Of a stretch of 64,000 nt of DNA, positions 28,027 through 58,997 are shown piece after piece. The notes under the pieces are model-generated. The model was not told where the DNA came from, ran no database searches, and saw only the letters and a list, made by a program, of their open reading frames with translations. Both the position numbers and the translations under genes were made by a program. Where the stretch lies: the sequence record NC_026927.1. The stretch is one strand, 5' to 3'. Numbering within the stretch: position 1 is the stretch's first letter; each line of letters starts with the position of its first letter.

Positions 28027-28827
28027 GTGGGTGAATATTTTTATCATGAGATCATCAAGAGAACTGTTGTCGGTTTCGGCAATCTCTTCAATGGTCTTAC
28101 TATCCAAAAGGTAGACAAGAAGCAAAACGTCATTAACGTGATGAAGGTGCCTCTTGCATATGGTCCTACCCAGAAGTTTCTGGCAAAGATTACTCAGCAG
28201 GGTGAGTTAAACCAACCTACTGAGATTACTTTACCACGTATGTCTTTTGAGATGAACTCTCTTGCATATGACGGATCGCGGAAGACCGCACCCACTCAGA
28301 TGTTTAAGACACTAGATAACGGGGAGACACTTAAAAAGGTTTATCTTCCAGTTCCATATAATATTGGTTTTGAACTTAATATTATGACCAAGTTGAATGA
28401 GGATGCTCTACAACTTGTCGAACAAATTCTTCCATATTTCCAACCTTCCTTTAATATTACTGTCGATCTAGTTGATCAGATTGGTGAGAAGAGAGATATC
28501 CCTGTGGTACTCGACTCCATCAACTTCACTGACGACTATGAAGGAGACTTCACAGGTAGACGTATTCTAATCTATACTCTATCATTCACTGCCAAATCCT
28601 ACATGTTTGGACCTGTCAGTGAATCTGGGGATGGTCTTATTCGTAAGGTTCAGGTTGATTATCATACTTCAACCGAGAGGGATTCACCTCGTGAGGTTCG
28701 TTACACAGCCACACCAGACCCAGTTGATGCCGAACCCACTGATGACTTTGGGTTTAGTGAAGAAACTGTAGTATACTTTGATTCTAAAGTATACAGTCCA
28801 ACTCAAGGTGAGGATTACACTCCATGA
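28027..28827 (+). CDS. gp15: Tail sheath stabilizer / tail terminator gp15
   Basis: KVPLAYGPTQKFLA, LPRMSFEM and PVPYNIGFEL motifs; GTG start. Confidence 0.92.
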   Translation: MGEYFYHEIIKRTVVGFGNLFNGLTIQKVDKKQNVINVMKVPLAYGPTQKFLAKITQQGELNQPTEITLPRMSFEMNSLAYDGSRKTAPTQMFKTLDNGETLKKVYLPVPYNIGFELNIMTKLNEDALQLVEQILPYFQPSFNITVDLVDQIGEKRDIPVVLDSINFTDDYEGDFTGRRILIYTLSFTAKSYMFGPVSESGDGLIRKVQVDYHTSTERDSPREVRYTATPDPVDAEPTDDFGFSEETVVYFDSKVYSPTQGEDYTP

Positions 28828-29249
28828 GCTTTGAATCAATAGATGATGCACTGGATATTGAATCCAGTATTGTGAAAAAAGAAGAAGAGGTGGAGGTTAC
28901 TCCTACCAATTCTAAAGAGAAACCATCTACTCCCCAAACTGAACAAGATTACAACTATAGTAGGGGACAACTCTATTCTCTCATTGAGAAGGGACAAGAG
29001 GCGGTTAACAACGCATTAGAACTCGCCAACGAAGGTTCTAGTGCTAGATCATATGAGGTTGTTGGTGGTCTTATTAAGAATGTCGCAGACGTTACTGATA
29101 AACTACTAGATCTCCAAAAGAAGGTTAAGGATCTGGATGAAATTTCAGTTACTAATAACCAAACCAATGTAACCAACAATTCGGTATTCGTCGGATCAAC
29201 TACTGAACTCCAGAAGATGTTGAAAGAAGGATTGTTGAATAACGATTAA
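28824..29249 (+). CDS. gp16: Terminase small subunit gp16
   Basis: DYNYSRGQLYSLIEKGQEA, ARSYEVVGGLIKNVAD and NNSVFVGSTTELQKML motifs. Confidence 0.9.
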   Translation: MSFESIDDALDIESSIVKKEEEVEVTPTNSKEKPSTPQTEQDYNYSRGQLYSLIEKGQEAVNNALELANEGSSARSYEVVGGLIKNVADVTDKLLDLQKKVKDLDEISVTNNQTNVTNNSVFVGSTTELQKMLKEGLLNND

Positions 29250-29254: not shown

Positions 29255-29668
29255 ATGGCTTACGAAGAAGAAAATCAGTGTAACTCTACACCTGAGGGTG
29301 AAGATTGCCCTAAGCACAAGAAGAAGTGCTGCAATTCTGAGGAAAAGAAACGCAAAAAGGGGATGTACGGTCTCCAGGATGAGGATAGTGAAGGCGATGA
29401 GTCCTCACAAGAGAATGGTGGCATGCCTCAGGATAGTGCCAATGAGGAAAGACAACTTAACCCAGACACTGACCTGAAGGACATGTCCAGTGATAGTAAG
29501 AAGAGGGCTATGGATTCTTTCCGTGAAAGAAGTTCTGAAGCTAAGAAAAGAAAATCAGATAAAGATAAGAAGGATGAATTGGCAACTGAACGCATGACAA
29601 AGGGCATAAGGTTCTTTGACAAACAGGGTTCAGGTTATATTAAAAAAGGTAAAAAGAGTTACGACTAA
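29255..29668 (+). CDS. Charged hypothetical protein, possibly head-internal
   Basis: 137 aa, rich in K/E/D, with a Cys cluster at the N-terminus (CNSTPEGEDCPKHKKKCC) and a basic C-terminus (KGIRFFDKQGSGYIKKGKK). Confidence 0.55.
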   Translation: MAYEEENQCNSTPEGEDCPKHKKKCCNSEEKKRKKGMYGLQDEDSEGDESSQENGGMPQDSANEERQLNPDTDLKDMSSDSKKRAMDSFRERSSEAKKRKSDKDKKDELATERMTKGIRFFDKQGSGYIKKGKKSYD

Positions 29669-29670
29669 CC

Positions 29671-30282
29671 ATGACACTAATTAACGAACATAATCTTGGA
29701 GCTTGGAAAGCTTTAAACCCCCAAGACAAAAGACTACAAGCATTAACACTCTCAGAACTATTGGAGAATGCCGATCCAACTAGCGTAGATTTCAGTAGTA
29801 TTACCTTTAAGGGTCGTACAGACGGTCTACTCGGAGATGGTCTCGATTGTGCTGAAAGTATTGGTTTTGTTGTATTTGATTGTGTATGTCTGTTCCTAGG
29901 AGCAGCAACACTAAGAGCTTCAGCCACTGCTGAGGTAGCCGAAGATATGGCTAAAGCTGCAGAACCTGTTGTTAACCAACTAACACAGTATATTAGAACC
30001 ATTTCTGATTCAGCATCATCAACATATGATGTTGCTTATGCTGTGTTTAAGGTAATCTCTACCATCTACAGTGGAGGTGCTTTAGGTGCTGTTTGTGGTG
30101 TGTTCTTCACGTCCCTAACTTGGTACAACGCTATTCTCTATGGAATGACTGCTGTTGGTACTATTATGGCTGCTTTGGCAACTGATGGTGCTGCTGAAAT
30201 TGGTATTATTGTTGTGGAAATAGCAACAGCTGGTTTCCTAATTTCCGACAGTGTTGCCTGCTCTAAAGCATGCAACTACTGA
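29671..30282 (+). CDS. Hydrophobic multi-helix hypothetical protein (membrane- or toxin-like)
   Basis: 203 aa; the C-terminal two-thirds is Ala/Gly/Val-rich, with several hydrophobic helices and Cys pairs at both ends. Confidence 0.6.
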   Translation: MTLINEHNLGAWKALNPQDKRLQALTLSELLENADPTSVDFSSITFKGRTDGLLGDGLDCAESIGFVVFDCVCLFLGAATLRASATAEVAEDMAKAAEPVVNQLTQYIRTISDSASSTYDVAYAVFKVISTIYSGGALGAVCGVFFTSLTWYNAILYGMTAVGTIMAALATDGAAEIGIIVVEIATAGFLISDSVACSKACNY

Positions 30283-30383: not shown

Positions 30384-33164
30384 ATGGGTAATCTACACAA
30401 ATGGTTTTCAGGTTCCAAGTCCAAAGACGGCAAGTCTGGATGGGTGAATGTAAAGACTGGTGGTACCTGTGCAAGTGATGAACCCGGAGAGGGCACACCC
30501 AAGTGTGTGTCTTCATCTAAAAGAGCTAGTATGACCAAATCCGAAAGGGAGTCTGCTTCTCGTAGAAAGAAAGCTGCTGACCCTGGACAACAACAAAAGT
30601 CAGGTGCTGCTAAACCAACTTACGTATCTACCGACAAGCCTAAGAAGATGAAAAAAGAACATTTTTCTAATTGGAGGGATGATACACCAGAACCAATGGT
30701 CAATGAACTCTTTGGATTGGGTAAGAAGAAGGAAAAGAAAAACAACGGTTCTGGTGGTTCTTTCTCAGCTTCTACGGCAGAGGCGAATGCTAGATCCAGG
30801 GGGTGGAAACCTGAAAACGAAAAACCAAAACCCATGGGTGCTTTTGGTCCAGAAAAGGGAACGAGTAAATCCCCAGACCAATTCAGAAATGTGAAGAAAG
30901 CTTTGGGTATTCGTCCAAAACCAGAACCCAAAGTTACAAGTCAAACAAAACCAGAACCCAAAGTTACAAGTCAAACAAAACCAGATCCTACACCCAAGTC
31001 CAATCCATATTCTGGAAAGGATAAGTTAAAACCCCAAAGTTTTAGTACTGCAGTTAAATCTGGTACTAAAATGAAAAAGAGTACTCCATCAGCCCCAGGT
31101 AAAATTGTGACTCAACAAGGTAATCAAAAAGAGCAGTTTTCTAACTGGAGAGATAACTACGTAGCCACTGAGCACGAGTTCATCGATCTCATCAAACCAG
31201 AACCTATGGTAGGCATTTCAGAAACCAAGGAAGGTCAGATGAAAGCTGGTAGGGAGCAGTATAAGAAAGAGAAGGAGGAAGGTCGTTATGGTGGAACCAA
31301 ACCTTCTAATGAGAGAGTCGCAAAACTCATGAAGAAGCTGAAGGAGGAGACCAAGCAAGATGGTCCCGAACCTACAACGAAACAGACTCGTGGTGCTATG
31401 AAGAACATTCGTAGTAAAATGAATACTGCAAGTCACAAAGACCCAGATAAGAAGAAGACAAAGCAAGAACTAGCTTTCCAAAAGGCTAGAGCTAAGGCTT
31501 GGGGTATGACTGAAGGAAAGGAAGAGAAGAGAAAGGATGCAATGCCCGAGGGTGATGTTGGATATGAGATTCATAAGAAAGCAGTTGCCCAATACAACAA
31601 ACAGAACCCTAGTAAGAAGGTGAAGGAGGAAGTAGAAATCTCCGAAGAGGATAAGAAAGGTTCAGGTAGTGGTAAGAAAGACGCCTGTTACAATAAGGTG
31701 AAGGCATCAGCTTCTGTATGGCCATCAGCTTATGCTTCTGGTCGTTTAGTTCAGTGCCGTAAGAAAGGTGCTGCCAACTATGGCAAATCCAAGAATGAGG
31801 AGTTTATCAGTATTGTAGCCTCCGAGTATTTCATCAATGAAGGACTCAATGATGAGGGAGTGGCAGAACTAGTTGATTTGTTGGGACCTATTCAGTTTGG
31901 TGAATTGGTTAATGAGATTGCTGAGGGTGTAGAAGAAGATCTACTTACTGAAGCTAGAGCTGGTGGAGTTAAGATTGAACCCAAGAATAAGTCTGGTACT
32001 AGAGTTTCAGATCTATCCAAGGGAGCTAGAACTAGAGCTATTAACACACTCCGTAAAGAGAAGGCAGCTAAGAGAGCTGGTGAAGGTGAAGGTGGCAAGG
32101 GCAGTCTAAAGGACTCCCTAAAATCACAAGCAAAGGCAGCTAAGAAACCAGAACCCAAAAAGGCTAAGAAGGAAGAACCCAAAAAGGAAGCAGCTAAACC
32201 AGCAGTTGAGAAGGCTAAAGCCACTCAACCTAAGAAGAGAGGTTTCTTAGATTCTGTAGCCCGTCAAGTTAATAAGGGTATGGATCGTCATAGAAAGGCA
32301 ATGGAACTAGCCCGTGAAACTGGTAAGGTAGCTAAGAAGGCAGCCAATATTGGTGGTCAAGTTGCTAAAGGTGCAGTTCAAGGTGTTAAGGACACCGCCA
32401 AGACAACCAAAAACGTAGCTGATAAACTAAAAGAAGAATACGTATTGGTTGTATCTGAAGAGTGGAAGCCTGACCCCACTGAGAAACGTGAAAAGAAAGC
32501 TGCTAAGCTAGGTAGGGATGAAGAGATCGAGAAAGGCAAGTCCAAGAAATATGGACGCGATGAATCCAAGATTGACAAACTCTACAAGCGTCGTATGGCT
32601 GTTCAGTTCAAAAAGAAAATGAGTGAGGAAAGACTAGACGAACTCAAGTGTTGGAAAGGTTACAAGCGTAAGAAGGGTTCTACACCTGGAGCTCCTGGTT
32701 CCTGTGTGAAAGAAGGTTTCTCCAGTTGGAGAGACGACCTTGACCTTATGGAAGGTGTTGCAGCTTGGCAACGTAAGTTTGTTTCTGAAGAATCCAAAAG
32801 AGAACTTCAGATTCGTGCTTCGAAGGGTGACAAGGCAGCCATGAAGAAACTTCATCAACTTCGTGCCGATGGTAAGATTGGTAAAGAACCTGGTTTTGAA
32901 CCTAAGAGAGATCTTCCTGAAGGTGCAGCATGGACACGTAAAGAGGGAAAGAATAAAGCCGGGGGGCTTAACGAGAAGGGACGTAAGTCTTACGAACGAG
33001 AGAACCCCGGCAGTGACCTCAAAGCACCACAACCTGAGGGTGGTAGTCGCAAGAAGTCGTTTTGCGCACGTATGAGCGGAATGAAGAAGAAACTAACCTC
33101 TTCTAAGACTGCTAACGATCCCGATTCAAGAATCAATAAGTCACTAAGAAAATGGAACTGCTGA
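30384..33164 (+). CDS. Modular basic protein (926 aa), candidate head-internal polyprotein
   Basis: Lys-rich modules separated by acidic spacers, with KE(H/Q/G)FS(N/S)WRD three times. It includes a DACYNKVK...WPSAYASG module and a C-terminal AAWTRKEGKN...SFCARM...SLRKWNC module (DUF5872-like and DUF6321-like from memory). Confidence 0.7.
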   Translation: MGNLHKWFSGSKSKDGKSGWVNVKTGGTCASDEPGEGTPKCVSSSKRASMTKSERESASRRKKAADPGQQQKSGAAKPTYVSTDKPKKMKKEHFSNWRDDTPEPMVNELFGLGKKKEKKNNGSGGSFSASTAEANARSRGWKPENEKPKPMGAFGPEKGTSKSPDQFRNVKKALGIRPKPEPKVTSQTKPEPKVTSQTKPDPTPKSNPYSGKDKLKPQSFSTAVKSGTKMKKSTPSAPGKIVTQQGNQKEQFSNWRDNYVATEHEFIDLIKPEPMVGISETKEGQMKAGREQYKKEKEEGRYGGTKPSNERVAKLMKKLKEETKQDGPEPTTKQTRGAMKNIRSKMNTASHKDPDKKKTKQELAFQKARAKAWGMTEGKEEKRKDAMPEGDVGYEIHKKAVAQYNKQNPSKKVKEEVEISEEDKKGSGSGKKDACYNKVKASASVWPSAYASGRLVQCRKKGAANYGKSKNEEFISIVASEYFINEGLNDEGVAELVDLLGPIQFGELVNEIAEGVEEDLLTEARAGGVKIEPKNKSGTRVSDLSKGARTRAINTLRKEKAAKRAGEGEGGKGSLKDSLKSQAKAAKKPEPKKAKKEEPKKEAAKPAVEKAKATQPKKRGFLDSVARQVNKGMDRHRKAMELARETGKVAKKAANIGGQVAKGAVQGVKDTAKTTKNVADKLKEEYVLVVSEEWKPDPTEKREKKAAKLGRDEEIEKGKSKKYGRDESKIDKLYKRRMAVQFKKKMSEERLDELKCWKGYKRKKGSTPGAPGSCVKEGFSSWRDDLDLMEGVAAWQRKFVSEESKRELQIRASKGDKAAMKKLHQLRADGKIGKEPGFEPKRDLPEGAAWTRKEGKNKAGGLNEKGRKSYERENPGSDLKAPQPEGGSRKKSFCARMSGMKKKLTSSKTANDPDSRINKSLRKWNC
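30917..30988 (+). repeat. 30-nt tandem repeat (2.4 copies) encoding KPEPKVTSQT
   Basis: AAAACCAGAACCCAAAGTTACAAGTCAAAC occurs exactly at 30917-30946 and 30947-30976, then partially (AAAACCAGATCC). Confidence 0.9.
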
Positions 33165-33270: not shown

Positions 33271-34482
33271 ATGTCTATCCTAACTCACACTAATAATAAC
33301 TACGAAAGGTACGATGAGGACAATGTTCTAGCGTCACCTCAGCCTGCATTTAGGAGTGAGAGTATGGATGCAGTTGGTTGGACTAATTTTACCTGGAAAG
33401 ATTTTGATGGTGATTATGTCAAGACTCTAGTGGGTGGTGGTATAACTTCTATTAATGAGTATGTGAAGAGAGACGTAGATAATAATATAGTCACTCAACC
33501 CCAATACATCAGGCACGATATAGACAATAACCCAGTAGGTAGTTTGAATCCACTAGAAATTGTAGGTGTTGGTAATATCACAGCACCTAACGGATTTGCT
33601 GTCGGTAGGGATATGGCTGGTCAGGTTGCTGGTTATCAGGGTGGTACTGAACCCATCACTGTTGAAGGTCAGTTACAGAAACAAGAAACCCCTGGTGGTG
33701 CTTGGATTGGTATTAGTCCTTGGACGGCAGTTGATACTGCAGTAAAAGAAATAGACTCTTCTTTGGTGGGAGCTAAACTTCGTATTTCTACTAGAATTCA
33801 AGATGCCATAATCGCTCCATCATATCTCACTACCAATACTCCTGCTTCGGATGTTGTTGTTGGTGAGATGACTCCCGATGTGAAAGGTACTCTTACTTCT
33901 AGTGGAGCGGACCCTGCATATCCAGGAGATGTACTTACTCAGACAGAAGGCACTATAACCGGTGGTATCGCTCCATTTGCTAAGTCATATCAATGGTTTA
34001 GAAGAGAAACTGGCACCACGAATGGGTATGCATTCTTTGGTGCTCCAGATGGATTGACTTATACTATTCAGTATAGTGATATTGGTTATGATGTTAAAGC
34101 AAGAACTAGGTGGCAAGATTCATATAACTATCTTAGAACCGTCGGTACGGTTCCAAACCACATTGAGGTTATAGCAGAACCACTAGAATTGGTATCAAAG
34201 GGAACTCTAGATGGAGTTGGTCAGTCAGGCACAGTCCTAACACAAACTGCAGCAGTATTCAGTGGTGGTGTTCCCCCATTCACTTATAGATATGAATGGG
34301 TTAGGAGAGTGACTGGTGAGTCTGGATTCTTCGAGTTTGGTGCTCCAGATGGTCTTCAGTATATTATTAGGTCTTCTGATATCGGTTATGATATTAGAGG
34401 AAGAACCGAAATCTTTGACTCCCTAGGAAATTCGAAGAGTAGTAGTTCTACTATTCCTGGAGATGTTTCAGTAACATCATAA
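33271..34482 (+). CDS. Putative virion decoration protein with two tandem Ig-like domains
   Basis: Two ~100-aa repeats: G.VLTQT...GG..P..Y.(Q/E)W.RR.TG...FGAPDGL.Y.I..SDIGYD...RT...DS. Confidence 0.6.
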   Translation: MSILTHTNNNYERYDEDNVLASPQPAFRSESMDAVGWTNFTWKDFDGDYVKTLVGGGITSINEYVKRDVDNNIVTQPQYIRHDIDNNPVGSLNPLEIVGVGNITAPNGFAVGRDMAGQVAGYQGGTEPITVEGQLQKQETPGGAWIGISPWTAVDTAVKEIDSSLVGAKLRISTRIQDAIIAPSYLTTNTPASDVVVGEMTPDVKGTLTSSGADPAYPGDVLTQTEGTITGGIAPFAKSYQWFRRETGTTNGYAFFGAPDGLTYTIQYSDIGYDVKARTRWQDSYNYLRTVGTVPNHIEVIAEPLELVSKGTLDGVGQSGTVLTQTAAVFSGGVPPFTYRYEWVRRVTGESGFFEFGAPDGLQYIIRSSDIGYDIRGRTEIFDSLGNSKSSSSTIPGDVSVTS

Positions 34483-34511: not shown

Positions 34512-36158
34512 ATGGCGGATACTAAGTATCTTGGGAATCCAAACCTGAAGAAGGCGAACGTTGCTGTCAACTTCACTTTGGAACAGGTGAAGGAGTATGT
34601 TAGATGTAAAGAAGACCCAATCTTTTTTGCCAGGAACTACATTAAGATTGTGTCCCTGGACCATGGTCTTGTGCCATTTAAGTTGTATGATTTCCAGGAA
34701 GACTTAGTTAGAAGTTTCCATGAGAAGAGATTTACTATCTGTAAGATGCCTAGACAGACAGGTAAGTCTACAACCTGTGTGGCGTTTCTTCTCCACTACT
34801 TGGTATTCAATGATAATGTCAACGTCGGTATCCTAGCAAACAAAGCAGCAACTGCTAGAGAGATTCTAGGACGACTACAGATTGCATATGAAAACTTACC
34901 GTCGTGGATGCAACACGGTATTGTTTCTTGGAATAAAGGTTCAGTGGAGTTGGAGAATGGCAGTAAGATATTGGCAGCTTCTACGTCTGCAAGTGCTGTC
35001 CGAGGTATGTCTTTTAATATCATCTTCCTCGATGAATTTGCGTTCGTTCAGAACAATATTGCAGAGCAGTTCTTTGCCTCTGTTTATCCTACTATTACTT
35101 CTGGTAAATCAACGAAAGTAATCATCGTTTCCACGCCACATGGTATGAACCACTTCTACCGAATGTGGCATGATGCTGAGAGGGGTATAAATGAGTACAA
35201 TCCAATTGAAGTTCACTGGTCTCAGGTACCGGGAAGAGACTCCATATGGAAAGAACAAACTATTAAGAACACTTCTGCTGAACAGTTCAAGGTTGAGTTT
35301 GAGTGTGAGTTCATTGGTTCTGTTGATACTTTGATTGCTCCATCTGTTCTCAGGGCGATGGAATACAGAGAACCAATTAGGAAGCAAAAGAGTTTAGATA
35401 TATTCTACGAACCAGAAAAAGATAACATCTATGTAATCACCGTAGATGTTGCCAGAGGGGTCGGAAAGGATTACTCTGCCTTTGTGGTGTTTGATGTCAC
35501 AAAGTTCCCCTACAAGGTCGTGGCGAAGTATAGAGACAACGAAATCAAGCCAATGGTATTCCCCAGTATCATTGAGAGGGTGGCAAAGTCATATAATAGG
35601 GCGTGGTGTCTTATTGAGGTGAATGATATTGGTGACCAAGTTGCCTCTATCCTAAACTATGATTTGGAGTATCCCAACCTCATGATGTGTGCTATGAGAG
35701 GTAGGGCTGGTCAGCAACTAGGTGCGGGTTTCAGTGGGTCCAAGACTCAGTTGGGTGTGAAGATGAGTGTTGCCACCAAGAAACTAGGTTGCTCCAACCT
35801 CAAGACTCTGGTGGAGGAAACTAAACTAATCTTTGAAGACTACAATATTGTTCAGGAACTGACGACCTTTATTCAAAAGAACAACTCATTCCAAGCGGAA
35901 GAGGGGTGTAATGATGACTTGGCTATGTGCTTGGTTATCTTCTCTTGGGTAGTGGCTCAGGACTACTTCAAAGAGATGACTAACAATGATGTGAGAAAGG
36001 AGATATACAATGAAAAGGAGAACCAGATTGAACAGGATATGTCACCATTTGGTTTCTTCTCTGACGGAACTGAAGAGGGTACCTTTGTAGATAATAGTGG
36101 GGACGTGTGGCACACTGATGAATATGGGGATATGAGCCACATGTGGGAATATATGTAG
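34512..36158 (+). CDS. gp17: Terminase large subunit gp17
   Basis: Walker A-type PRQTGKST, Walker B IIFLDEFAF, STPHGMNHFY, and nuclease motifs TVDVARG and DDLAM. Confidence 0.97.
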   Translation: MADTKYLGNPNLKKANVAVNFTLEQVKEYVRCKEDPIFFARNYIKIVSLDHGLVPFKLYDFQEDLVRSFHEKRFTICKMPRQTGKSTTCVAFLLHYLVFNDNVNVGILANKAATAREILGRLQIAYENLPSWMQHGIVSWNKGSVELENGSKILAASTSASAVRGMSFNIIFLDEFAFVQNNIAEQFFASVYPTITSGKSTKVIIVSTPHGMNHFYRMWHDAERGINEYNPIEVHWSQVPGRDSIWKEQTIKNTSAEQFKVEFECEFIGSVDTLIAPSVLRAMEYREPIRKQKSLDIFYEPEKDNIYVITVDVARGVGKDYSAFVVFDVTKFPYKVVAKYRDNEIKPMVFPSIIERVAKSYNRAWCLIEVNDIGDQVASILNYDLEYPNLMMCAMRGRAGQQLGAGFSGSKTQLGVKMSVATKKLGCSNLKTLVEETKLIFEDYNIVQELTTFIQKNNSFQAEEGCNDDLAMCLVIFSWVVAQDYFKEMTNNDVRKEIYNEKENQIEQDMSPFGFFSDGTEEGTFVDNSGDVWHTDEYGDMSHMWEYM

Positions 36159-40959: not shown

Positions 40960-41187
40960 ATGGAAATCGACACATCGGTTGTGGATGCCATTGTGAGTGG
41001 TGAAACACCCGCAGGTATTACACAATCCATTAAGGATCTTCTGTATGCAAAAGCAAGCGAAAGGGTTGATACCTATCGTGATGTAGTAGCAGACAGAATG
41101 TTTGGTGGTTCCGAAGTTCCCGAAGGGGAAACAGAAGAACCAGTAGCCGAACTTGAGAGTGATGAGGAAGGGGTAGAAGAAGAGTGA
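40960..41187 (+). CDS. Small acidic prohead core-like protein (gp67-like position)
   Basis: 75 aa with a very acidic C-terminus, between gp20 and gp21; AATAAATA at 40933-40940. Confidence 0.55.
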   Translation: MEIDTSVVDAIVSGETPAGITQSIKDLLYAKASERVDTYRDVVADRMFGGSEVPEGETEEPVAELESDEEGVEEE

Positions 41188-41441
41188 TTAAGATTGTATT
41201 CTCCGAGGTTGATAGTCCAACGGACTCTGACCAGGCAATCAGTCTCAACAACTCTAGTGGTGTTAGGGCAATTAATTGTTCTAAAAAACCATATCTACTC
41301 TACCTAATCGATAACATAAGTGGAGAGACTAGATCACTTACATTAGTGAGTAATGAAAGTCTTATCCTCAAAAAACACAGTTACGATAAGGTATATGCTT
41401 CATCGAAAACTGTTCGTATCGCTGGAGTAAGCATCTACTAA
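41184..41441 (+). CDS. Conserved hypothetical protein
   Basis: 85 aa, GTG start, coupled to both neighbours in the head cluster. Confidence 0.55.
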   Translation: MIKIVFSEVDSPTDSDQAISLNNSSGVRAINCSKKPYLLYLIDNISGETRSLTLVSNESLILKKHSYDKVYASSKTVRIAGVSIY

Positions 41442-41442: not shown

Positions 41443-42093
41443 ATGAAACTAATTACAGAAGAAATTAACAAGGTTGAATTTATTGTCGAAGAAAACAATG
41501 GCAAACAGTCATGTTTTATTGAGGGAAACTTCCTTCAGGGCAATATTAAAAACCGAAATGGTCGTGTCTATAGAACCGAGACACTAGCTCGTGAAGTTGC
41601 TCGTTACAATGAACAGTATGTTCAGAACGGACGAGCTCTCGGTGAACTTGGGCATCCTGATGGACCCACAGTTAACTTGGACCGAGTATCACATAACATT
41701 ATTTCACTTCGTCAAGAGGGGAATAATTTCATAGGTAAGGCAAAACTTCTTGATACTCCTATGGGAAATATCGCTAAGAGCCTTATTGGTGAAGGTGTTA
41801 AACTTGGAGTTTCTTCTCGTGGTGTTGGTTCCATTAGTGAAACGAAGCAAGGATATAAGCTTGTTGGTGAAGACTTTATGTTGGCAACCGCAGCTGATAT
41901 TGTAGCTGATCCTAGTGCCCCAGACGCTTTTGTTCAGGGTATCATGGAAGGAAAAGAGTGGGTTTTTGTTAATGGACTCTTGAGAGAGAGTGACATTAAG
42001 AGCACACAGTCTACAATTGACAAACTAGTTGTCACAAAGGAACTTGAGGAGAAGAAGATTCAACTTTTTCAAGATTTTCTTTCAAATCTATAA
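41443..42093 (+). CDS. gp21: Prohead protease gp21
   Basis: MKLITEE, NRNGRVY, ALGELGHP, VSSRGVGS and DIVADPSAPDAFV motifs. Confidence 0.96.
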   Translation: MKLITEEINKVEFIVEENNGKQSCFIEGNFLQGNIKNRNGRVYRTETLAREVARYNEQYVQNGRALGELGHPDGPTVNLDRVSHNIISLRQEGNNFIGKAKLLDTPMGNIAKSLIGEGVKLGVSSRGVGSISETKQGYKLVGEDFMLATAADIVADPSAPDAFVQGIMEGKEWVFVNGLLRESDIKSTQSTIDKLVVTKELEEKKIQLFQDFLSNL

Positions 42094-43318: not shown

Positions 43319-44722
43319 ATGTACAATTCCGCAAACTCCGAATTTCTCCAGGAGAAGTGGGCACCAATCCTCGAGCACGGTGAGTCCATCCAGGACGCAC
43401 ACAAGCGTGCCGTAACTGCCCAACTTCTAGAGAACCAGGAAGTAGCCCTTTCCGAAGAGCGTGCTTTCCTTTCAGAAGCTCCAACAGTAAACACCGACCC
43501 TAACGCAACTGGCAACGCTGGTTTCTCTGGTAATGGTGATCAATCAGTAGCTGGTTTCGATCCAGTACTCATCAGCCTCATCCGTCGTTCAATGCCTAAC
43601 TTGATGGCATACGACCTTTGTGGTGTTCAGCCAATGAACGGTCCTACCGGTCTTATCTTCGCGATGAGAAGCCGTTATGACTCACAGACAGGCGACGAGA
43701 CCTTCTACAACGAAGTCAACTCTGCCTTCTCCGCACAGAACCAGTCCGGTACAGCTACTCAGGGTAACTACTCTGGTCAGGTTGGCGCTGGTAACACAGT
43801 TGGTTTCGGTACAACCGCACAACGTGGTTCTAACCCCTCCATCCTCAACCCCGAGCCCGGTGACCAAGTTGGTTACAACGTAGGCCAGGGTATGTTGACC
43901 CAGGACGCTGAGAACCTTGGCGAAACTGGTACAGAGTTCAATGAGATGGGCTTCTCAATCGAGAAGGTCACCGTAACTGCTAAGTCACGGGCACTCAAGG
44001 CTCAGTACAGCATGGAATTGGCTCAGGATCTCAAAGCGATCCACGGTCTAAACGCCGAAGCTGAACTATCTAACATCCTCGCCTCTGAAATTCTTTCAGA
44101 GATCAACAGAGAAGTTGTTAGAACTATCTACAAGTCAGCTGTATTCGGTGCTCAGAACAACGTAGCCACTCCTGGTGTATTTGACCTAGACGTTGATTCC
44201 AACGGTAGATGGTCAGTTGAGAAGTTCAAAGGACTTATCTTCCAGATCGAAAGAGACGCTAACGCGATCGCGCAACAAACTCGTAGAGGAAAGGGTAACT
44301 TCATCCTTTGTTCCGCGGATGTTGCTTCAGCTCTAACCATGGCTGGTGTACTTGACTACACCCCAGCACTCAACGCTAACCTTAACGTTGATGACACCGG
44401 TAACACCTTCGCTGGTGTTCTACAAGGTAAGTATAGAGTCTACATTGACCCATACGCAGCTAACGTCAGCAACAACCAGTACTATGTCGCTGGTTACAAA
44501 GGTTCCTCACCTTATGACGCTGGTCTCTTTTATTGCCCCTACGTGCCATTGCAGATGGTCCGTTCAGTTGGACAGGACACCTTCCAGCCACGTATCGGAT
44601 TCAAGACCCGTTACGGAATGGTCGCAAACCCATTCGCAGAAGGTCTTGAAGCTGGCTATGGCCGCATCACTCCTAACTCCAACGTCTACTACAGACGCGT
44701 ACAAGTCAAAAATCTTATGTGA
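43319..44722 (+). CDS. gp23: Major capsid protein gp23
   Basis: EKWAPIL, DPVLISLIRRSMPNL.AYDLCGVQPM.GPTGLIFAMRS, KSRALKA.YS.ELAQDLKAIHG, YCPYVPL and GFKTRYG motifs. Confidence 0.98.
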   Translation: MYNSANSEFLQEKWAPILEHGESIQDAHKRAVTAQLLENQEVALSEERAFLSEAPTVNTDPNATGNAGFSGNGDQSVAGFDPVLISLIRRSMPNLMAYDLCGVQPMNGPTGLIFAMRSRYDSQTGDETFYNEVNSAFSAQNQSGTATQGNYSGQVGAGNTVGFGTTAQRGSNPSILNPEPGDQVGYNVGQGMLTQDAENLGETGTEFNEMGFSIEKVTVTAKSRALKAQYSMELAQDLKAIHGLNAEAELSNILASEILSEINREVVRTIYKSAVFGAQNNVATPGVFDLDVDSNGRWSVEKFKGLIFQIERDANAIAQQTRRGKGNFILCSADVASALTMAGVLDYTPALNANLNVDDTGNTFAGVLQGKYRVYIDPYAANVSNNQYYVAGYKGSSPYDAGLFYCPYVPLQMVRSVGQDTFQPRIGFKTRYGMVANPFAEGLEAGYGRITPNSNVYYRRVQVKNLM

Positions 44723-49801: not shown

Positions 49802-50278
49802 ATGGCAAAGGCTAAATCAGAACACTACGTAAACAATAAAGAGTTGCTAGCAGCACTCATCGATTATCGTGATAGGTTGGATATCGCAAGAAGAAGAGAT
49901 TTACCTAAACCACGTATCAGTAACTACGTAGGAGAGTGTTTCCTTAAGATTGCCACTCACCTTTCATACAAACCCAACTTCGTTAACTACATGTTCCGTG
50001 AGGACATGATCTCGGATGGTATCGAGAACTGCGTACAATACATTCACAACTTTGACCCTAATAAGTCCAGAAACCCCTTTGCCTACTTCACTCAGATCAT
50101 CCACTATGCTTTTCTGCGTAGGATCCAAAGAGAGAAGAGACAACTAGACATCAAGAACAAGATTGTCGAGAAGACTGGTTTTGAGTCTCTGATGACAAGT
50201 GACACTAACTTGACAAACGAGTATAGGAACGATTATAATGCCATCAGGGAAAACATTATTAACAAACTGAACTCATGA
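49802..50278 (+). CDS. gp55: Late transcription sigma factor gp55
   Basis: HYVNNKELL, KIATHLSYKPNFVNY and NPFAYFTQIIHYAFLRRIQREK motifs. Confidence 0.95.
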   Translation: MAKAKSEHYVNNKELLAALIDYRDRLDIARRRDLPKPRISNYVGECFLKIATHLSYKPNFVNYMFREDMISDGIENCVQYIHNFDPNKSRNPFAYFTQIIHYAFLRRIQREKRQLDIKNKIVEKTGFESLMTSDTNLTNEYRNDYNAIRENIINKLNS

Positions 50279-50439
50279 ATCAGTACCCCACATCTTCTGA
50301 TAATAGAAGGAATGATGCACATCAAGAAGGCAGAACAACTTATATTAGTGAATCTGAATGCAAGGAATGTGGGTGTGTAGTCAAACTCGTATGGTCCAAT
50401 AGGTGTCATTTCTGCACCATCAATAAATCAAACTCATAA
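50275..50439 (+). CDS. Small Cys4 zinc-ribbon-like protein (54 aa), not in the ORF track
   Basis: MNQYPTSSDNRRNDAHQEGRTTYISESECKECGCVVKLVWSNRCHFCTINKSNS; ATGA overlap with the gp55 stop. Confidence 0.5.
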   Translation: MNQYPTSSDNRRNDAHQEGRTTYISESECKECGCVVKLVWSNRCHFCTINKSNS

Positions 50440-50454
50440 AGGGAACAAACTAGA

Positions 50455-51504
50455 ATGGCATTGATCGCAGTTATCACGGATACTCATTATGGGGCGAGAA
50501 AAGGTGCTCAGTATCTTCATGATCACTTTGAGAAGTTCTACTCTGAGGTATTCTTCCCCACACTAAAGGAGAGAGGTGTTAAAACCATTCTCCACATGGG
50601 TGACGCCTTTGATAGTAGGAAGTCTATTGGGTTTGAGGTACTCAACTGGGCAAAGAGAGTTGTATTCGATCCTATGGCAGAATACGATGTACATATGATC
50701 GTGGGAAATCATGATTGTTATTACAAATCTACCAACAGAACTAACTCTCCAGACCTACTACTCAAAGACTACGACAATATCACCACCTATCATAGACCTA
50801 CAGAGGTAACTCTAGAGGGTATGGATACACTCCTACTCCCTTGGATTTGTGATGACAACAGGGAAGAGTCCCTGAAGATGATCAAGTCTTCCAAGTCTAA
50901 GTTTGCTGCTGGTCACTTAGAACTAGATGGGTTTGAGGCATATAGGGGACATACTTACAGAGATGGTAAGTTGGACAATGGGGTATTCAATAACTTCGAT
51001 AAAGTATTCTCTGGACACTTTCACACCCGTTCAGACAACGGAAAGATCTTCTATGTGGGTAACCCTTATGAGATGTTCTGGAACGATGTAAATGATCCCA
51101 GAGGGTTTGTTCTACTGGATACTGAAACTCTAGAGGTTGAGTATATCAACAACCCACATACCCTTTTCTCCGTTATCTACTATGAAGATACCAACTATAA
51201 ACTCTTCAATGCCAAAGAGTATGAAGGTAAGATTGTAAAGGTTATTGTCAGAAAGAATACTGACAGGAAACTCTTTGATAAGTTTCTAGACAAACTTATG
51301 AAGACCAATATCCTAGACATGAAGATCGTAGAGAACTTCAATATTCAGGAGGGGGAGGACTTCCAGGTAGAAGATATCGAAGAGAACACCCTATCAATTC
51401 TCAACCGATATGTAGATGAAGCAGACTATGAAGATAGTTCTATTCAGAAAGATGATATTAAGAATCTTATCTCTCAAATCTACCGAGAGGCATGTGAAGT
51501 ATGA
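50455..51504 (+). CDS. gp47: Recombination endonuclease subunit gp47 (Mre11/SbcD-like)
   Basis: TDTHYG, HMGDAFD, VGNHD, GHLE and SGHFH metallophosphoesterase motifs. Confidence 0.95.
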   Translation: MALIAVITDTHYGARKGAQYLHDHFEKFYSEVFFPTLKERGVKTILHMGDAFDSRKSIGFEVLNWAKRVVFDPMAEYDVHMIVGNHDCYYKSTNRTNSPDLLLKDYDNITTYHRPTEVTLEGMDTLLLPWICDDNREESLKMIKSSKSKFAAGHLELDGFEAYRGHTYRDGKLDNGVFNNFDKVFSGHFHTRSDNGKIFYVGNPYEMFWNDVNDPRGFVLLDTETLEVEYINNPHTLFSVIYYEDTNYKLFNAKEYEGKIVKVIVRKNTDRKLFDKFLDKLMKTNILDMKIVENFNIQEGEDFQVEDIEENTLSILNRYVDEADYEDSSIQKDDIKNLISQIYREACEV

Positions 51505-51794
51505 GAGACGCATGTTATATCATTACTGCATCAGAAGCAAAGGGTATGGATGTATACACCATCAAATCTGAGGGTGTGAAGAATGTTCTAATCTTTGAGA
51601 AAGGTGAAGATGCTGAGAGGTATGTTATAATGTTGAATGAAGATGAAGGATACATTGTGGGTGAAACACTAGAACTGGAAGTTTTTGAGGTTCCACTATC
51701 TGCCGTGGTAGAATCCCTGAACGAGAAAGGCTATAGTTACATCTATGTTAAACCCGATGACCTGTTTATTCCACCTGATGCCAAGAAAGTTTAA
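51501..51794 (+). CDS. Conserved hypothetical protein between gp47 and gp46
   Basis: VLIFEKGEDAERY and PDDLFIPP motifs; ATGA coupling. Confidence 0.6.
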   Translation: MRDACYIITASEAKGMDVYTIKSEGVKNVLIFEKGEDAERYVIMLNEDEGYIVGETLELEVFEVPLSAVVESLNEKGYSYIYVKPDDLFIPPDAKKV

Positions 51795-51796
51795 TT

Positions 51797-53524
51797 ATGT
51801 TGTTGTTTAAGAAACTAAGATGGCAGAACTTCCTATCCACTGGAGACAAGGGTATTGAAGTTGATTTCCTAATGAACAATACCAATCTTATCATTGGTAG
51901 TAATGGTGCTGGTAAGAGTACCCTTTTGGATGCTCTTACCTTTGTTCTATTTAATAAGCCATTCAGGAAGATCACCAAACCTCAACTAGTTAATAGTATC
52001 ACTGAGAAGAGGTGTGTAGTTGAGATTGAGTTTGAAACAAACAATAAGAGTTACTTGGTTCGCCGTGGAATCAAACCTAATGTATTTGATATCGTAGTAG
52101 ATGGGAAACTATTAGACAAGCGTGGTGATGACAGGGATAACCAGAAACTATTAGAAGAGAATATTCTTAAGGTTAATTATAAATCATTCACTCAGGTGAT
52201 TATCCTTGGGGCATCTACCTTCGTCCCCTTTATGCAACTCACTGCCTCCAATCGTAGAGATGTGATTGAGGATCTACTAGACATCCGTGTATTTAGTCAG
52301 ATGTCAGGTATCGTCAAGGATCGTATCAGGCAACTCCGTGAAGATATCAAGATTCTAGATCTCAAGAGGGGATCTCTTAGAGATAAGTCTGAGATGCAGA
52401 AGAACTTTATCAATGAGATTACTAAGAAGGGTGAGAGTAATATTGAATCCAAAGGAGAGAAGATCAAGACTCTATTGTTTGAGAAGCAAACTCTAGAAAC
52501 CGAGAATATCACAACTCTAACTAAACTGAAAGAACTTCAGGATGAGTTGGAGGGACTAGAGGATGCTTCTGATAAACTACGTAAGTTGGGTAGTCTAAGG
52601 GGTAAGATTTCCCAGAAGATTACTACACTCACTAAGGAACACAAGTTCTTCAAAGACAATGCTTCCTGTCCTACCTGTACTCAGGATATTGATGAAGAGT
52701 TTCGTAGTGTCAGACTAAGTGAGTTGGGTGACAAAGCAAAGGAGATGAACAAAGGGTTTAAAGAACTAGAAGATACTATTGAACGAGAAGAGAACCGAGA
52801 GAATGAGTTTAAGAGTATCTCCAAACAGATTCTAGAACTCAACACCCAGGTAAGTACCAATAATACAAAGAACACCAGTATCAGTATGAATATTGGTGAT
52901 CTCGAAAGTGAGATTGGATCTATCAGGCACTCCATTGATAACCAAACAGAGGAGAAAGAGAAACTAGATCGTTTCCAAGATGACCTGAGTCGAGTATTTG
53001 ATACTCTCTCCACCAGAAACTCTGAGATGGATAACAATAAGTTTATCTATGAGTTACTAAAAGATGGTGGAGTGAAGACTAATATCATCCGCAAGTATAT
53101 TCCCTTCATCAACAAACAGGTGAATAGGTATCTCCAGATGATGGAGTTCTATATTAACTTCGAGTTAGATGAAGAGTTTAATGAGACTGTAGTATCACCT
53201 ATTCATGAGAACTTCTCATACTCTTCCTTCTCTGAGGGTGAGAAGATGAGAATTGACTTGGCACTTCTATTCACCTGGAGAGAAGTTGCTAGGGTTAGAA
53301 ACTCTGTGAATACAAACCTCCTAATTATGGATGAGGTGTTTGATAGTTCTCTAGATGGTTTTGGAACAGAAGAGTTCCTCAAAATCATCAGATATGTTGT
53401 ACAAGATGCTAATGTATTCATTATTAGTCACAAACAAGAACTCCACGAACGTTTCGATAGTGTTCTACGATTTGAAAAGGATAGAGGGTTCTCCAAACTA
53501 ACTCTAAATAAAACAAACGATTAA
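51797..53524 (+). CDS. gp46: Recombination endonuclease subunit gp46 (Rad50/SbcC-like)
   Basis: Walker A GSNGAGKS, zinc hook CPTC, signature FSEGEK, Walker B LIMDE, and ISH. Confidence 0.95.
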   Translation: MLLFKKLRWQNFLSTGDKGIEVDFLMNNTNLIIGSNGAGKSTLLDALTFVLFNKPFRKITKPQLVNSITEKRCVVEIEFETNNKSYLVRRGIKPNVFDIVVDGKLLDKRGDDRDNQKLLEENILKVNYKSFTQVIILGASTFVPFMQLTASNRRDVIEDLLDIRVFSQMSGIVKDRIRQLREDIKILDLKRGSLRDKSEMQKNFINEITKKGESNIESKGEKIKTLLFEKQTLETENITTLTKLKELQDELEGLEDASDKLRKLGSLRGKISQKITTLTKEHKFFKDNASCPTCTQDIDEEFRSVRLSELGDKAKEMNKGFKELEDTIEREENRENEFKSISKQILELNTQVSTNNTKNTSISMNIGDLESEIGSIRHSIDNQTEEKEKLDRFQDDLSRVFDTLSTRNSEMDNNKFIYELLKDGGVKTNIIRKYIPFINKQVNRYLQMMEFYINFELDEEFNETVVSPIHENFSYSSFSEGEKMRIDLALLFTWREVARVRNSVNTNLLIMDEVFDSSLDGFGTEEFLKIIRYVVQDANVFIISHKQELHERFDSVLRFEKDRGFSKLTLNKTND

Positions 53525-53529
53525 ATCTT

Positions 53530-53658
53530 ATGAAAAGGTTCTTGTTATTTGGTGCTATATTTGCACTAGTTGGGGCTGGACTATCACATGGTCAGTTCCA
53601 CCTCTACAACTCTTCTGTTCCACATGTTCATGAAAATGGAGTAATTCATTCACACTAA
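53530..53658 (+). CDS. His-rich exported or membrane-anchored peptide (42 aa), not in the ORF track
   Basis: MKRFLLFGAIFALVGAGLSHGQFHLYNSSVPHVHENGVIHSH; fills the gap between gp46 and the oxygenase. Confidence 0.6.
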   Translation: MKRFLLFGAIFALVGAGLSHGQFHLYNSSVPHVHENGVIHSH

Positions 53659-53662
53659 TATT

Positions 53663-54385
53663 ATGCAAGGTCTAGATCTAGTTATTGAATACCCAAACGT
53701 ATTTCCCGATGATCTATGTGATGAGATGATCGAGAGGTTTGAGAAGGATGATAGGAAAAGTAAGGGACATAACGGCTCCTTTGGACCTGAATTTACAACA
53801 GATAAGGTATCAATAGACCTATACTATACAGGACTACCCGAATGGGTTGATATTGATACTAAATCATTTGAGTTAATAACACCCTATGTTGCGGAATATG
53901 TGAATTTATTGAGTGATAACTTCCACATGAAGGAAACTGCTTTTATAAATGACCAGGGATATCAGATACAGAGAACTGATCCTGGTGGTTTCTTTAGTTG
54001 GCACTGTGACCATACTTCATATCCAATACTAGACCAACGCCTTATCAATACGCAGGGTGGTGATTCATATTGTATTCGTGATAGGATAGCTACCTATATC
54101 ATATACCTAAATGACAGAACTGGACTATCTGATGGAGTTACAGAGTTTGGGTTTGGTGATAACTTGAAGACAGTCACTGCAGAAAAAGGAAAACTCATCA
54201 TGTTTCCTGCTAACATTTTATATCCACATAGGGGAACTACCCTGGAAACTGGAGTAAAATACTTAATGACAGGTTGGGTAGTCCGTGACGCAGTGATGAG
54301 ATCTGAAATTTCACCACAAGATTATGAAGAAAGGTTTGAGAGATACGAGAGGATGCCCTATCTCACTCCAGTGGACAATCGATAA
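53663..54385 (+). CDS. 2OG-Fe(II) oxygenase (prolyl-4-hydroxylase-like)
   Basis: WHCD (HxD), IIYLND, PHRG and KYLMTGW motifs. Confidence 0.85.
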   Translation: MQGLDLVIEYPNVFPDDLCDEMIERFEKDDRKSKGHNGSFGPEFTTDKVSIDLYYTGLPEWVDIDTKSFELITPYVAEYVNLLSDNFHMKETAFINDQGYQIQRTDPGGFFSWHCDHTSYPILDQRLINTQGGDSYCIRDRIATYIIYLNDRTGLSDGVTEFGFGDNLKTVTAEKGKLIMFPANILYPHRGTTLETGVKYLMTGWVVRDAVMRSEISPQDYEERFERYERMPYLTPVDNR

Positions 54386-54429
54386 ACTGTCCACCCCCAC
54401 CAGTCATGGGGGTTTTTCTATGCCATAAT
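54371..54429 (+). promoter_or_regulatory. Palindrome, hairpin and extended -10 upstream of the peptidase/VWA gene
   Basis: GTGGACA-N10-TGTCCAC at 54371-54394, a CCCCA/TGGGG hairpin with T tract, and TGcCATAAT at 54421-54429. Confidence 0.5.
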
Positions 54430-54453
54430 AGGTTCATACCAAGGGAAACACCT

Positions 54454-56598: not shown

Positions 56599-56658
56599 TG
56601 TGACACTCCACAAACTGGCACAATGGGGGGTTGCAGGAATCCCCTTCCCGTGTATAAT
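56599..56658 (+). promoter_or_regulatory. Sigma70-type early promoter with upstream palindrome
   Basis: TTGCAG (56630-56635), N17, TATAAT (56653-56658); TGTGACA-N10-TGGCACA at 56599-56622. Confidence 0.65.
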
Positions 56659-56691
56659 AGTTGTATACCAAACAAGGAAACCACAAACTCA

Positions 56692-57825
56692 ATGGCCCGA
56701 CTCGCTATGACAACTGATCAAATTGTTGAGAAACTGAAAGAGACCTATGGTGAGAACGTAACTACAGCTGAACTCAAAGCCTTCTGTGCTATGAATGATT
56801 GTGGTTACCCTACAGTCACTCGTCGATTGGAAGAATATAAGTCTGGTCGTGGTCGTTGGAATCTAACCCTAAACGAGAAGTTGGAACAAACCTATCAAGG
56901 ACCATCTGGTGTCCCTGCTGTTATGGATATTTCAGAAACAAACCTTGTTCCAGACAAAGATAGTAACTTTGTTTCATTCGGTAACTTCACTGATTTGAAA
57001 CAAGTCATCAAGTCTGGTATCTTCTATCCTACCTTTATCACTGGTTTATCTGGTAACGGAAAAACCTTTGGTGTAGAACAAGCTTGTGCTCAACTTGGTA
57101 GGGAACTGATTCGAGTAAATATTACAATTGAAACCGATGAAGACGATCTTATTGGTGGTTTCCGTCTCATTGATGGTGCTACTGTTTGGCATAATGGTCC
57201 AGTCATCGAGGCTCTGGAACGGGGAGCTGTTCTTCTTCTAGATGAGATTGATCTGGCTTCTAACAAGATTCTTTGTCTTCAATCTATCCTAGAAGGTAAG
57301 GGAGTATTCCTCAAGAAGATTGGTAAGTTTGTGAGACCTACCAATGGGTTCAACGTGATTGCAACCGCAAACACAAAAGGTAAGGGTTCTGACGATGGTA
57401 GGTTTATTGGAACTAATGTTCTGAATGAAGCATTCCTAGAACGTTTCCCTGTAACCTTTGAGCAGGAATATCCAGTAGCATCAGTAGAAACTAAACTCCT
57501 GAAGAAGTATGCTTCCTCATTGGGTATTGTAGATGATAAGTTTTGTAAGTATCTGGCAGACTGGGGTGATATCATCCGTAAAACATTCTATGATGGTGGT
57601 GTAGATGAAGTTATCTCCACACGACGTTTGGTTCACATCCTTCGGGCATATAGTATCTTTGATGACAAATCAAAGGCAGTTGCTATCTGTCTAAACAGGT
57701 TTGATGATGAAACCAAACAAGCCTTTATGGATCTTTACGACAAGATTGACAACGAAGTCACCTTTCAATTTGGTGAAGGTACAGATAACGTTCAGTACTC
57801 TGAAACACCAGATACAAACTTCTAA
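56692..57825 (+). CDS. cobS: MoxR-type AAA+ ATPase (cyanophage CobS-like)
   Basis: Start re-called at the ATG after the promoter. Walker A GLSGNGKT, Walker B LLLDEID, ATANTKG and AFLERF. Confidence 0.85.
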   Translation: MARLAMTTDQIVEKLKETYGENVTTAELKAFCAMNDCGYPTVTRRLEEYKSGRGRWNLTLNEKLEQTYQGPSGVPAVMDISETNLVPDKDSNFVSFGNFTDLKQVIKSGIFYPTFITGLSGNGKTFGVEQACAQLGRELIRVNITIETDEDDLIGGFRLIDGATVWHNGPVIEALERGAVLLLDEIDLASNKILCLQSILEGKGVFLKKIGKFVRPTNGFNVIATANTKGKGSDDGRFIGTNVLNEAFLERFPVTFEQEYPVASVETKLLKKYASSLGIVDDKFCKYLADWGDIIRKTFYDGGVDEVISTRRLVHILRAYSIFDDKSKAVAICLNRFDDETKQAFMDLYDKIDNEVTFQFGEGTDNVQYSETPDTNF

Positions 57826-58266: not shown

Positions 58267-58273
58267 CCCATAT

Positions 58274-58991: not shown

Positions 58992-58997
58992 TATTAT

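Follow-up and report, generated by a model that had tools for sequence, protein, structure and literature searches.

A modular Lys-rich protein encoded between the terminase genes of cyanophage ACG-2014f is a candidate precursor of head-internal cargo

What does the large hypothetical gene lying between the terminase genes of Synechococcus phage ACG-2014f encode, and what becomes of its product? This T4-like cyanomyovirus (Kyanoviridae, 228-kb genome) is the source of the 64,000-nucleotide stretch of NC_026927 analyzed here, hereafter the window, in which a position equals the position in the record minus 62000. The gene, gp131, occupies positions 30384-33164 of the + strand as a single unbroken frame of 926 codons plus stop. 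It lies on the same strand as gp15/gp16 (28027-29249) on one side and gp17 (34512-36158) on the other, together with three further hypothetical open reading frames (ORFs) of 137, 203 and 403 amino acids (aa) in the gp16-gp17 interval, and the genes for the portal, gp21 (Peptidase_S77), the gp22 scaffold and gp23 are all found less than 10 kb beyond this region. Annotated as hypothetical, gp131 belongs to the T4-GC119 family, matches PHROG 3477 over its full length (1989 bits) and has a basic composition (Lys 17.7%, net charge +85, pI 9.9). We propose from sequence comparison that gp131 is made as a polyprotein precursor of cargo for the head interior and would be cut by gp21 into basic units plus acidic spacers, a reading to which we assign a probability of roughly 0.65.

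Sequence searches against Pfam, NCBIfam, PADLOC and PDB returned nothing on the function of gp131 besides DUF6321 (PF19846), found at the C-terminus (aa 855-924, 74.8 bits for a cut-off of 28.5, E = 8.7e-21). The Pfam match is limited to the last 80 residues, and no enzyme or peptidase domain was recognisable with Pfam, NCBIfam or PADLOC. When phage genomes were searched using tblastn, the full-length arrangement was found only in ACG-2014f, and other cyanomyoviruses matched separate pieces, namely the first ~85 residues, aa 434-467 and the C-terminus. Modules are nevertheless common to gp131 and Syn9 gp114, P-SSM4_160 and S-SSM7_236 (T4-GC119). Comparison of long and short DUF6321 proteins reveals a limited set of units, with at least six conserved types in the gp131 family, whose number and order vary: a G[S/T]LHKWF unit with a Cys pair, a KKGxGSGxKDACY...WPSAYASG..C unit, a CWxGY...C unit, DUF6321 itself, Gly/Ala-rich hydrophobic stretches and sometimes DUF192. 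In a set of 5.8 billion metagenomic proteins, over 4,000 that are 509-1,600 aa long match gp131 in composition and have DUF6321 at the C-terminus, and about 8,000 short ones have DUF6321 alone or plus one other module.

How are such units joined? The original prediction had listed hydrophobic-x-E strings closing the acidic spacers of gp131, and all of them are present. In this single sequence their enrichment is a modest signal: 23 [LIVMF]xE sites are observed for 13.5 ± 3.2 expected (P = 0.004) and 8 [LIVMF]xE[GAS] sites for 3.5 expected (P = 0.02) in 20,000 composition-preserving shuffles, while control motifs with a terminal D, K, Q, R, S or T show no enrichment. The comparative signal is strong. 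From a comparison set of about 360 relatives, junction statistics were obtained on 120 homologues of 509-1000 aa, counting distinct 12-residue upstream contexts only. A Glu lies at most six residues upstream of a conserved module in 214 of 215 contexts, and [LIVMF]-x-E is found within five residues before the LHKWF unit in 31 of 36 contexts, the KDACY/WPSAYASG unit in 47 of 49, DUF6321 in 48 of 50 and the CWxGY unit in 56 of 58, compared to a background of 11.4% at random positions of the same proteins. In the 214 contexts aligned on the Glu, position P3 is V (30%), I (29%), L (21%), M (5%) or F (2%), hydrophobic residues totalling 86% versus 15.5% in the background, and P1′ is G (49%), A (19%) or S (3%), that is 71% G/A/S; P2 is unconstrained, and P4-P6 are acid-rich yet variable. 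Upstream of many junctions there is a conserved linker, [F/Y]-S-[N/D]-W-R-x-[D/E]. Its three copies in gp131, KE(H/Q/G)FS(N/S)WRD, were located as claimed earlier at aa 91-99, 249-257 and 776-784 (from positions 30654, 31128 and 32709); they encode the same protein motif with different synonymous codons, which argues for selected motifs rather than a recent DNA duplication. Eight junctions of gp131 are conserved in the family, after E280, E421, E486, E523, E753, E790, E846 and probably E108; the figure of about ten products is a guess.

The prohead protease is the candidate for acting on these sites. T4 gp21 cleaves after L/I-x-E, first observed as a Glu-Ala bond, and recognizes few sequence determinants, at accessible sites only (PMC9026906). 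With a hydrophobic P3, a free P2 and G/A/S at P1′, the junctions match this motif, and the 215 contexts bear out the earlier proposal of basic units split by acidic junctions of the gp21 type. The proposed processing enzyme, gp21, is encoded at 41443-42093 (+; PF03420, E = 6.8e-33) and itself contains CFIE|G near its N-terminus. The predicted propeptide cleavage site FLSE|AP, which the original prediction had pointed out in the capsid protein, is found in gp23 (43319-44722) at 43466-43483 (+; aa 50-55), and its context AFLSE|AP indicates the type of site expected in ACG-2014f. The gp22 scaffold has eight [LIVMF]xE[GAS] sites.

Read from its N-terminus, with all features on the + strand, gp131 opens with the LHKWF unit and its Cys pair (module A, 30384-30644, aa 1-87, net +10, predicted local distance difference test score [pLDDT] of 55-78). 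Since its start, M-G-N-LHKWF, aligns with the [V/I/M]-x-E|G-[S/T]-LHKWF boundary of relatives, gp131 begins exactly at a predicted cut. Linker 1 (KEHFSNWRD ... PEPMVNE|L; 30645-30707, aa 88-108) leads to a Pro/Lys-rich disordered unit (30708-31127, aa 109-248, net +20) containing a perfect 30-nucleotide tandem repeat (30916-30985, 2.3 copies, encoding PEPKVTSQTK) that differs by one unit in copy number among ACG-2014f isolates. Linker 2 (31128-31223, aa 249-280) combines KEQFSNWRD with a conserved element resembling a capsid-targeting signal (..TEHEFIDLIKPEPMVGISE|T), of which the family-wide form, WRDDFKA[MT]EYEFIDLIKPEPLV[ST]E, occurs once each in 66 of the 120 homologues; the likeness of aa 260-280 to a capsid-targeting leader is only partial. 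Basic helical peptides follow (31224-31628, aa 281-415, net +16), with candidate sites after E321, E377, E389 and E415, and then the junction EVEISE|ED (31629-31646, aa 416-421), in which E421 is invariant in an alignment of 41 sequences.

The second half of the protein is organized likewise. Module B (KKGxGSGxKDACY...WPSAYASGxLVxCRK with a Cys pair; 31647-31841, aa 422-486) ends in FINE|G and is separated by an acidic spacer (31842-31952, aa 487-523, net -11) from the next unit. This spacer, flanked by FINE|G and LLTE|A, is kept in relatives (..NE|GINEEG...E|AYALTGKKK) and is probably excised. Beyond it lie a long basic helical region (31953-32642, aa 524-753, net ~+32) with sites KLKE|E, VVSE|E, KMSE|E and RLDE|L, and module D, a CWKGY...C mini-unit with a Cys pair (32643-32708, aa 754-775) that is preceded in relatives by the narrower motif [LIV]-x-E in 56 of 58 contexts. 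Linker 3 (KEGFSSWRDDLDLME|G; 32709-32753, aa 776-790) connects it to a helical 55-aa insert (32754-32921, aa 791-846, pLDDT 79-87) that ends in DLPE|G, repeats the first residues of DUF6321 (GVAAWQRK) and is missing in several ACG-2014f isolates. The last unit, module C, is DUF6321, a small four-helix domain with a Cys pair (32922-33161, aa 847-926, net +13).

Variation among isolates follows the same borders. Close ACG-2014f variants of gp131 range from 549 to 936 aa, and repeats of a junction sequence delimit every large deletion: aa 91-248 is bounded by the first and second KExFSNWRD, aa 280-321 and 278-418 by xSE/xKE sites, and aa 797-851 by two copies of ..E|G-x-AAW[Q/T]RK. Modules exchangeable via the junction motif would explain the gain and loss of cassettes between isolates, as well as the continuum, at the same locus, from 90-aa genes made of a leader plus DUF6321 to polyproteins of about 1000 aa. 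The cassette organization put forward in the original prediction thus finds support in units gained and lost and in isolate indels placed at junctions, and the comparison of module content across cyanophage homologues agrees with it, with common modules, varying number and order, and conserved junctions. In some relatives (P0043, P0091 and P0083), DUF192 (PF02643) sits between junction sites, so larger folded domains could be polyprotein cargo too.

If gp131 is loaded into the prohead, traces of the loading signal might be expected among its single-module relatives. T4 internal proteins (IPs), their leader and its processing by gp21 are textbook knowledge. The leader of T4 IPIII and IPII reads MKTYQEFIAE|A (NC_000866), with residues 4 and 7 required for targeting and residues 8 and 10 for processing. 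Stand-alone DUF6321 proteins of 90 aa start with MKTYKEFITE|VAAWQRK.., MKTYKDFITE|V.. or MKCYKEFISE|V.., and others with MKSFRQYISE|K.., MTFDEFITE|A.. or MKTFKELRKQLEE|S... In nine retrieved proteins, 7-8 of the first 10 residues are identical to the T4 leader, and residues 4, 7, 8 and 10 are the same in the DUF6321-protein leaders and in T4. The two leader-bearing DUF6321 genes that we traced are both located between gp16 and gp17 of T4-like phages, with gp13-gp15, sheath and portal genes as neighbours and Peptidase_S77 on one contig. One LHKWF unit is likewise found on its own, with the leader MKTFEQFTE|GS.., and many short forms retain a minimal M-x-E|G start. In a 151-aa relative (P0180), an upstream unit is fused in front of a capsid-targeting-type leader (..KTYKDFITE|V), which makes that leader internal. 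No leader-bearing ORF was found within the window.

Phages of other types provide a natural control. In T7-like cyanopodoviruses (beside capsid/scaffold genes), a pelagiphage (after the capsid gene), crAss-like phages and other contigs, DUF6321 is leaderless and starts with MGLLSSPAWTRK.., MAQKKNVRLK.. or MAK[ST]PAW[TQ]RKEGK... Among 80 loci from a genome collection, DUF6321 is leaderless in the ~50 without T4-like neighbours, and a leader or a Glu-ending linker directly precedes it at each of the six loci that have gp15/gp16 as neighbours. The acidic leader therefore tracks the T4-like context and not the DUF6321 domain; as leaderless relatives begin at the domain, cutting would restore the same N-terminus. 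The consistent capsid-gene neighbourhood across phage types suggests a head-associated role for DUF6321. Leaderless copies adjoining capsid or scaffold genes (L006:2504-2788, L007:2459-2713, L008:2444-2704, L013:635-931 and L015:7001-7252) span a pelagiphage, T7-like cyanopodoviruses, a Phage_capsid_4 contig and a crAss-like contig, and DUF6321 appears to be a pan-phage protein, small, basic and head-associated, with no solved structure related to its fold. A cellular origin of the domain was considered and rejected: its matches are nearly all on short aquatic contigs from metagenome-assembled or single-amplified genomes, with phage-like neighbours, and no core host gene is indicated.

Published virion proteomes place two homologues in cyanophage particles. 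T4-GC119 is listed as "Structural protein" with 13 counts in S-SM1 particles and is absent from the S-PM2 genome (Sullivan et al. 2010, Table S8, PMC3037559); the S-SM1 gene, S-SM1_115, lies directly after gp16 and a second virion protein gene. S-SCSM1_29, a 517-aa protein encoded between terS and terL, shares its modules and junctions with the gp131 family (GGVSE|GTLHKWF, EAMTE|GKDKKG.. and FLQVSE|GAAWTKK) and is annotated as a virion protein from mass spectrometry of CsCl-purified phage (PMC9602691). An AlphaFold model of the whole gp131 (mean pLDDT 45) is useful solely for separating disordered from folded segments; it contains folded islands at aa 1-60, ~730-830 and 864-926, and all conserved junctions are in segments with pLDDT below 50, where they would be accessible. 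Modelled alone from a more diverse alignment, DUF6321 reaches a pLDDT of 92 and a predicted template modelling score of 0.71, with four short helices; searches with this fold gave no PDB match at E <= 10 and, in BFVD, members of the DUF6321 family only.

Leaders of the same kind are found elsewhere in the genome. A scan of N-termini over ~214 kb of the 228 kb of ACG-2014f (all but positions 50001-62000 and the last ~2.2 kb) identified ..SLLSFLSE|AAD in gp190 (record positions 137570-140248) and ..SFLTFLTE|ARS in gp194, a cytidylyltransferase (record positions 142791-144005), both outside the window. The P-SSM4 orthologue of gp194 (P-SSM4_155, L003:1370-2521), in the cytidylyltransferase family T4-GC190, starts with MKKFSAFLKE|AQK, and T4-GC190 is a cyanophage-core protein detected in S-SM1 virions with 25 counts (PMC3037559). 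The leader may account for the presence of the enzyme in S-SM1 particles, and together with this detection it supports a working leader/gp21 loading route in this group of phages.

We envisage the following sequence of events. From its position and strand between gp16 and gp17, gp131 would be made late, with packaging and head genes; the T4 late promoter sequence TATAAATA is absent directly upstream, and its four copies in the window are not above chance. The protein would be built into the prohead core, possibly by means of the aromatic/acidic linkers (K-E-x-F-S-N-W-R-D...) and the internal element ..TEHEFIDLIKPEPMVGISE acting as prohead signal. During maturation, the S77 serine protease gp21 would cut after Glu at [V/I/L/M]-x-E|[G/A], a pattern that is seen in the sequence, and liberate the LHKWF unit, the Pro/Lys-rich unit, the basic helices, the WPSAYASG unit, the CWKGY mini-unit and DUF6321. 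The short acidic spacers would leave the head, like T4 propeptides, and the basic units (sum ~+85) would stay with the packaged DNA, where they might either neutralise charge or be ejected with the DNA as early-acting proteins.

Several observations weigh against this interpretation. gp131 starts with MGNLHKWF and has no capsid-targeting leader of its own, and the T4 targeting signal was defined at the N-terminus; the polyprotein as originally predicted is thus supported by the junctions, the cassettes, the homologues in two cyanophage virions and the T4-type leaders of relatives, but not by an N-terminal signal in gp131 itself. Some junctions in relatives deviate, with the hydrophobic residue at P4 or none (S-SM1 ..TQNE|S, Syn9 ..VQME|G), and the junction counts come from related, non-independent sequences. 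A conserved L-N-E within DUF6321 implies that not every motif can be a cut site. Because the gp16-gp17 slot of S-SCSM1 also has tail-fibre genes, position alone cannot assign gp131 to the head. The Syn9 homologue, gp114, is in the genome yet was undetected in Syn9 virions (PMC3037559), and the S-SM1 and S-SCSM1 supplements give counts or presence only, with no termini, and lend cleavage no direct support.

Could gp131 then be an uncleaved virion protein, with modules strung like beads as domains of one flexible structural or DNA-binding chain and hydrophobic-x-E-G as a mere preference of linkers or domain caps? Proteomes that show presence only, a mostly disordered model, as in many flexible structural proteins, and the off-motif junctions are all compatible with such a chain. 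We nonetheless consider it unlikely, as it leaves unexplained the IPIII-like leader of single-module relatives (7-8 of 10 residues identical), the leaderless relatives that start at the predicted cut in phages lacking the protease, and the constraint on P3 next to drifting P2 and P4-P6. Packaging followed by trimming at one or two sites, for instance to release DUF6321 or remove the spacer, with most motifs unused, would agree with the few determinants and accessible sites of T4 gp21 and with motifs that are surely protected, such as LNE in DUF6321. The same strongly conserved junction at all four module types, and the location of every conserved junction in a low-confidence, probably exposed segment, make limited processing rather improbable.

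Two further explanations seem to us very improbable. Stand-alone forms often start with M-x-E|G, and indels fall at junctions, as if the modules had once been separate M-x-E-G genes whose codons were kept through fusion without any proteolysis. Yet P3 in the fusions is V/I/L in 80% of contexts and M in just 5%, and the M-x-E-G starts or T4-type leaders of the separate genes would themselves be left without explanation. gp131 might also be a late DNA-binding or host-takeover protein that adheres to particles and turns up in virion preparations as a contaminant; its +85 charge could give adventitious binding, and the homologue was not seen in Syn9. There is equally little chance of this, given that family members were found in two independent purified-virion proteomes, that DUF6321 genes adjoin capsid and scaffold genes in unrelated phage types, and that relatives bear a leader of the capsid-targeting type.

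Returning to the precursor polyprotein, a bolder version can be formulated, which as a whole we hold as doubtful. gp131 could conceivably be a "Gag-like" recombining polyprotein whose junction code ([V/I/L]-x-E|G/A, often after S-[N/D]-W-R) admits any small module. Modules plugged into it might be carried into the prohead and released by gp21, a strategy that would be undescribed for tailed phages. The linkers might perhaps double as internal capsid-targeting signals, and the modules might possibly be fast-evolving ejected proteins (e.g. anti-defence or host-takeover) instead of mere DNA counter-ions. Equally tentatively, DUF6321 may be a pan-phage head-internal protein with a fold without a solved relative.

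The other ORFs of the interval do not extend the system. The original prediction had attributed similar chemistry to the 137-aa ORF (29255-29668); this holds for composition, but the ORF has one [LIVMF]xE, no WR linker and no module in common with gp131, and we rejected it as part of the gp131 system in the lack of any common motif. The 203-aa ORF (29671-30282, +), which has a Gly/Ala/Cys-rich hydrophobic C-terminal half, occupies the slot of DUF7243/T4-GC403 in other cyanomyoviruses. T4-GC403 is abundant in S-SM1 virions (60 counts); homology of the 203-aa ORF to T4-GC403/DUF7243 was rejected since there is no similarity. The 403-aa ORF (33271-34482, +) contains two copies of a ~95-aa repeat (..VLTQT....GG.PF...Y.W.RR.TG....FGAPDGL.Y.I..SDIGYD..), has its own PHROG, 3552, and no Pfam match. 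The gp16-gp17 slot appears to be a general hotspot for late or virion genes: in metagenomic contigs of T4-like cyanophages (L010-L012, 5775-10509), it contains a 700-aa protein with a weak S-adenosylmethionine lyase match, and a gene with a staphylococcal nuclease (SNase) fold immediately before gp17. Between the portal gene and gp21, two small ORFs of 75 and 85 aa (40960-41441, +) have no Pfam match, the 75-aa one being strongly acidic with EVPE|G; in T4, gp67/gp68 occupy this place.

Our results suggest that cyanomyoviruses have kept the T4 way of loading cargo, by a leader and a gp21 site, and have extended it into a modular polyprotein. If true, the cargo that marine T4-like phages package could be predicted by a simple sequence rule, which would also cover the virion cytidylyltransferase, a long-standing puzzle; the hypervariable locus between the terminase genes would be explained, DUF6321 would be a widespread phage head-associated domain, and gp131 would show a natural way to pack several foreign peptides into capsids of the T4 type. 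To our knowledge, cyanomyoviruses have been regarded as lacking homologues of the IPs or of their capsid-targeting sequence (CTS). In the searchable literature, we found no assignment of IP/CTS homologues to cyanomyoviruses, no account of cyanophage internal proteins that carry a leader, none of a precursor of many units joined by a conserved junction code, and no modular, leader or cleavage-site analysis of T4-GC119, earlier listed just as a hypothetical or structural protein that is part of a mobile cassette (Sullivan et al. 2010).

The closest relatives of gp131 are the members of its own family, T4-GC119 (Syn9 gp114, S-SM1_115, P-SSM4_160 and S-SSM7_236), with which it shares the slot after gp16 and the WPSAYASG, CWxGY and DUF6321 modules. 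It resembles T4 IPI, IPII and IPIII in belonging to a T4-like phage with an S77 prohead protease, in its small basic predicted products, in the hydrophobic-x-E sites followed by A/G, in the leader of its single-module relatives and in a locus that is hypervariable like the T-even IP loci (attributed to Repoila et al.). The T4 proteins are encoded by separate genes with one N-terminal leader each, whereas in gp131 a single ORF strings together up to about ten units, with junctions inside the protein and a conserved linker, S-[N/D]-W-R. Homology of mature T4 IPIII to DUF6321 was considered and rejected, a weak 54-aa BLASTP segment (pairwise E = 0.001) receiving an hhalign probability of 0.5% (E = 0.11). 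In the giant phages phiKZ, 201phi2-1 and SPN3US, a protease related to gp21 cleaves many head-internal proteins after Glu, a few of them more than once, and the fragments stay in the head (PMC9026906); these are large separate proteins with S/A-x-E sites, for which a repeated junction code joining mini-modules is not described. Retroviral Gag and adenovirus core precursors, packaged whole and cut in the immature particle by a viral protease that releases basic nucleic-acid-associated peptides and spacer peptides, are similar by analogy only, the viruses, proteases and folds being unrelated and no homology being implied. The nearest concept to a multi-unit precursor such as gp131 is the polyvalent protein (Iyer et al. 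2017, PMC5512222), a late gene product with many units per polypeptide, for which delivery along with the DNA and release through proteolysis have been proposed. Polyvalent proteins contain their own enzymatic or anti-defence domains and an embedded zincin-like peptidase, none of which is recognisable in gp131, whose units are tiny basic peptides and would need the prohead protease in trans for their release.

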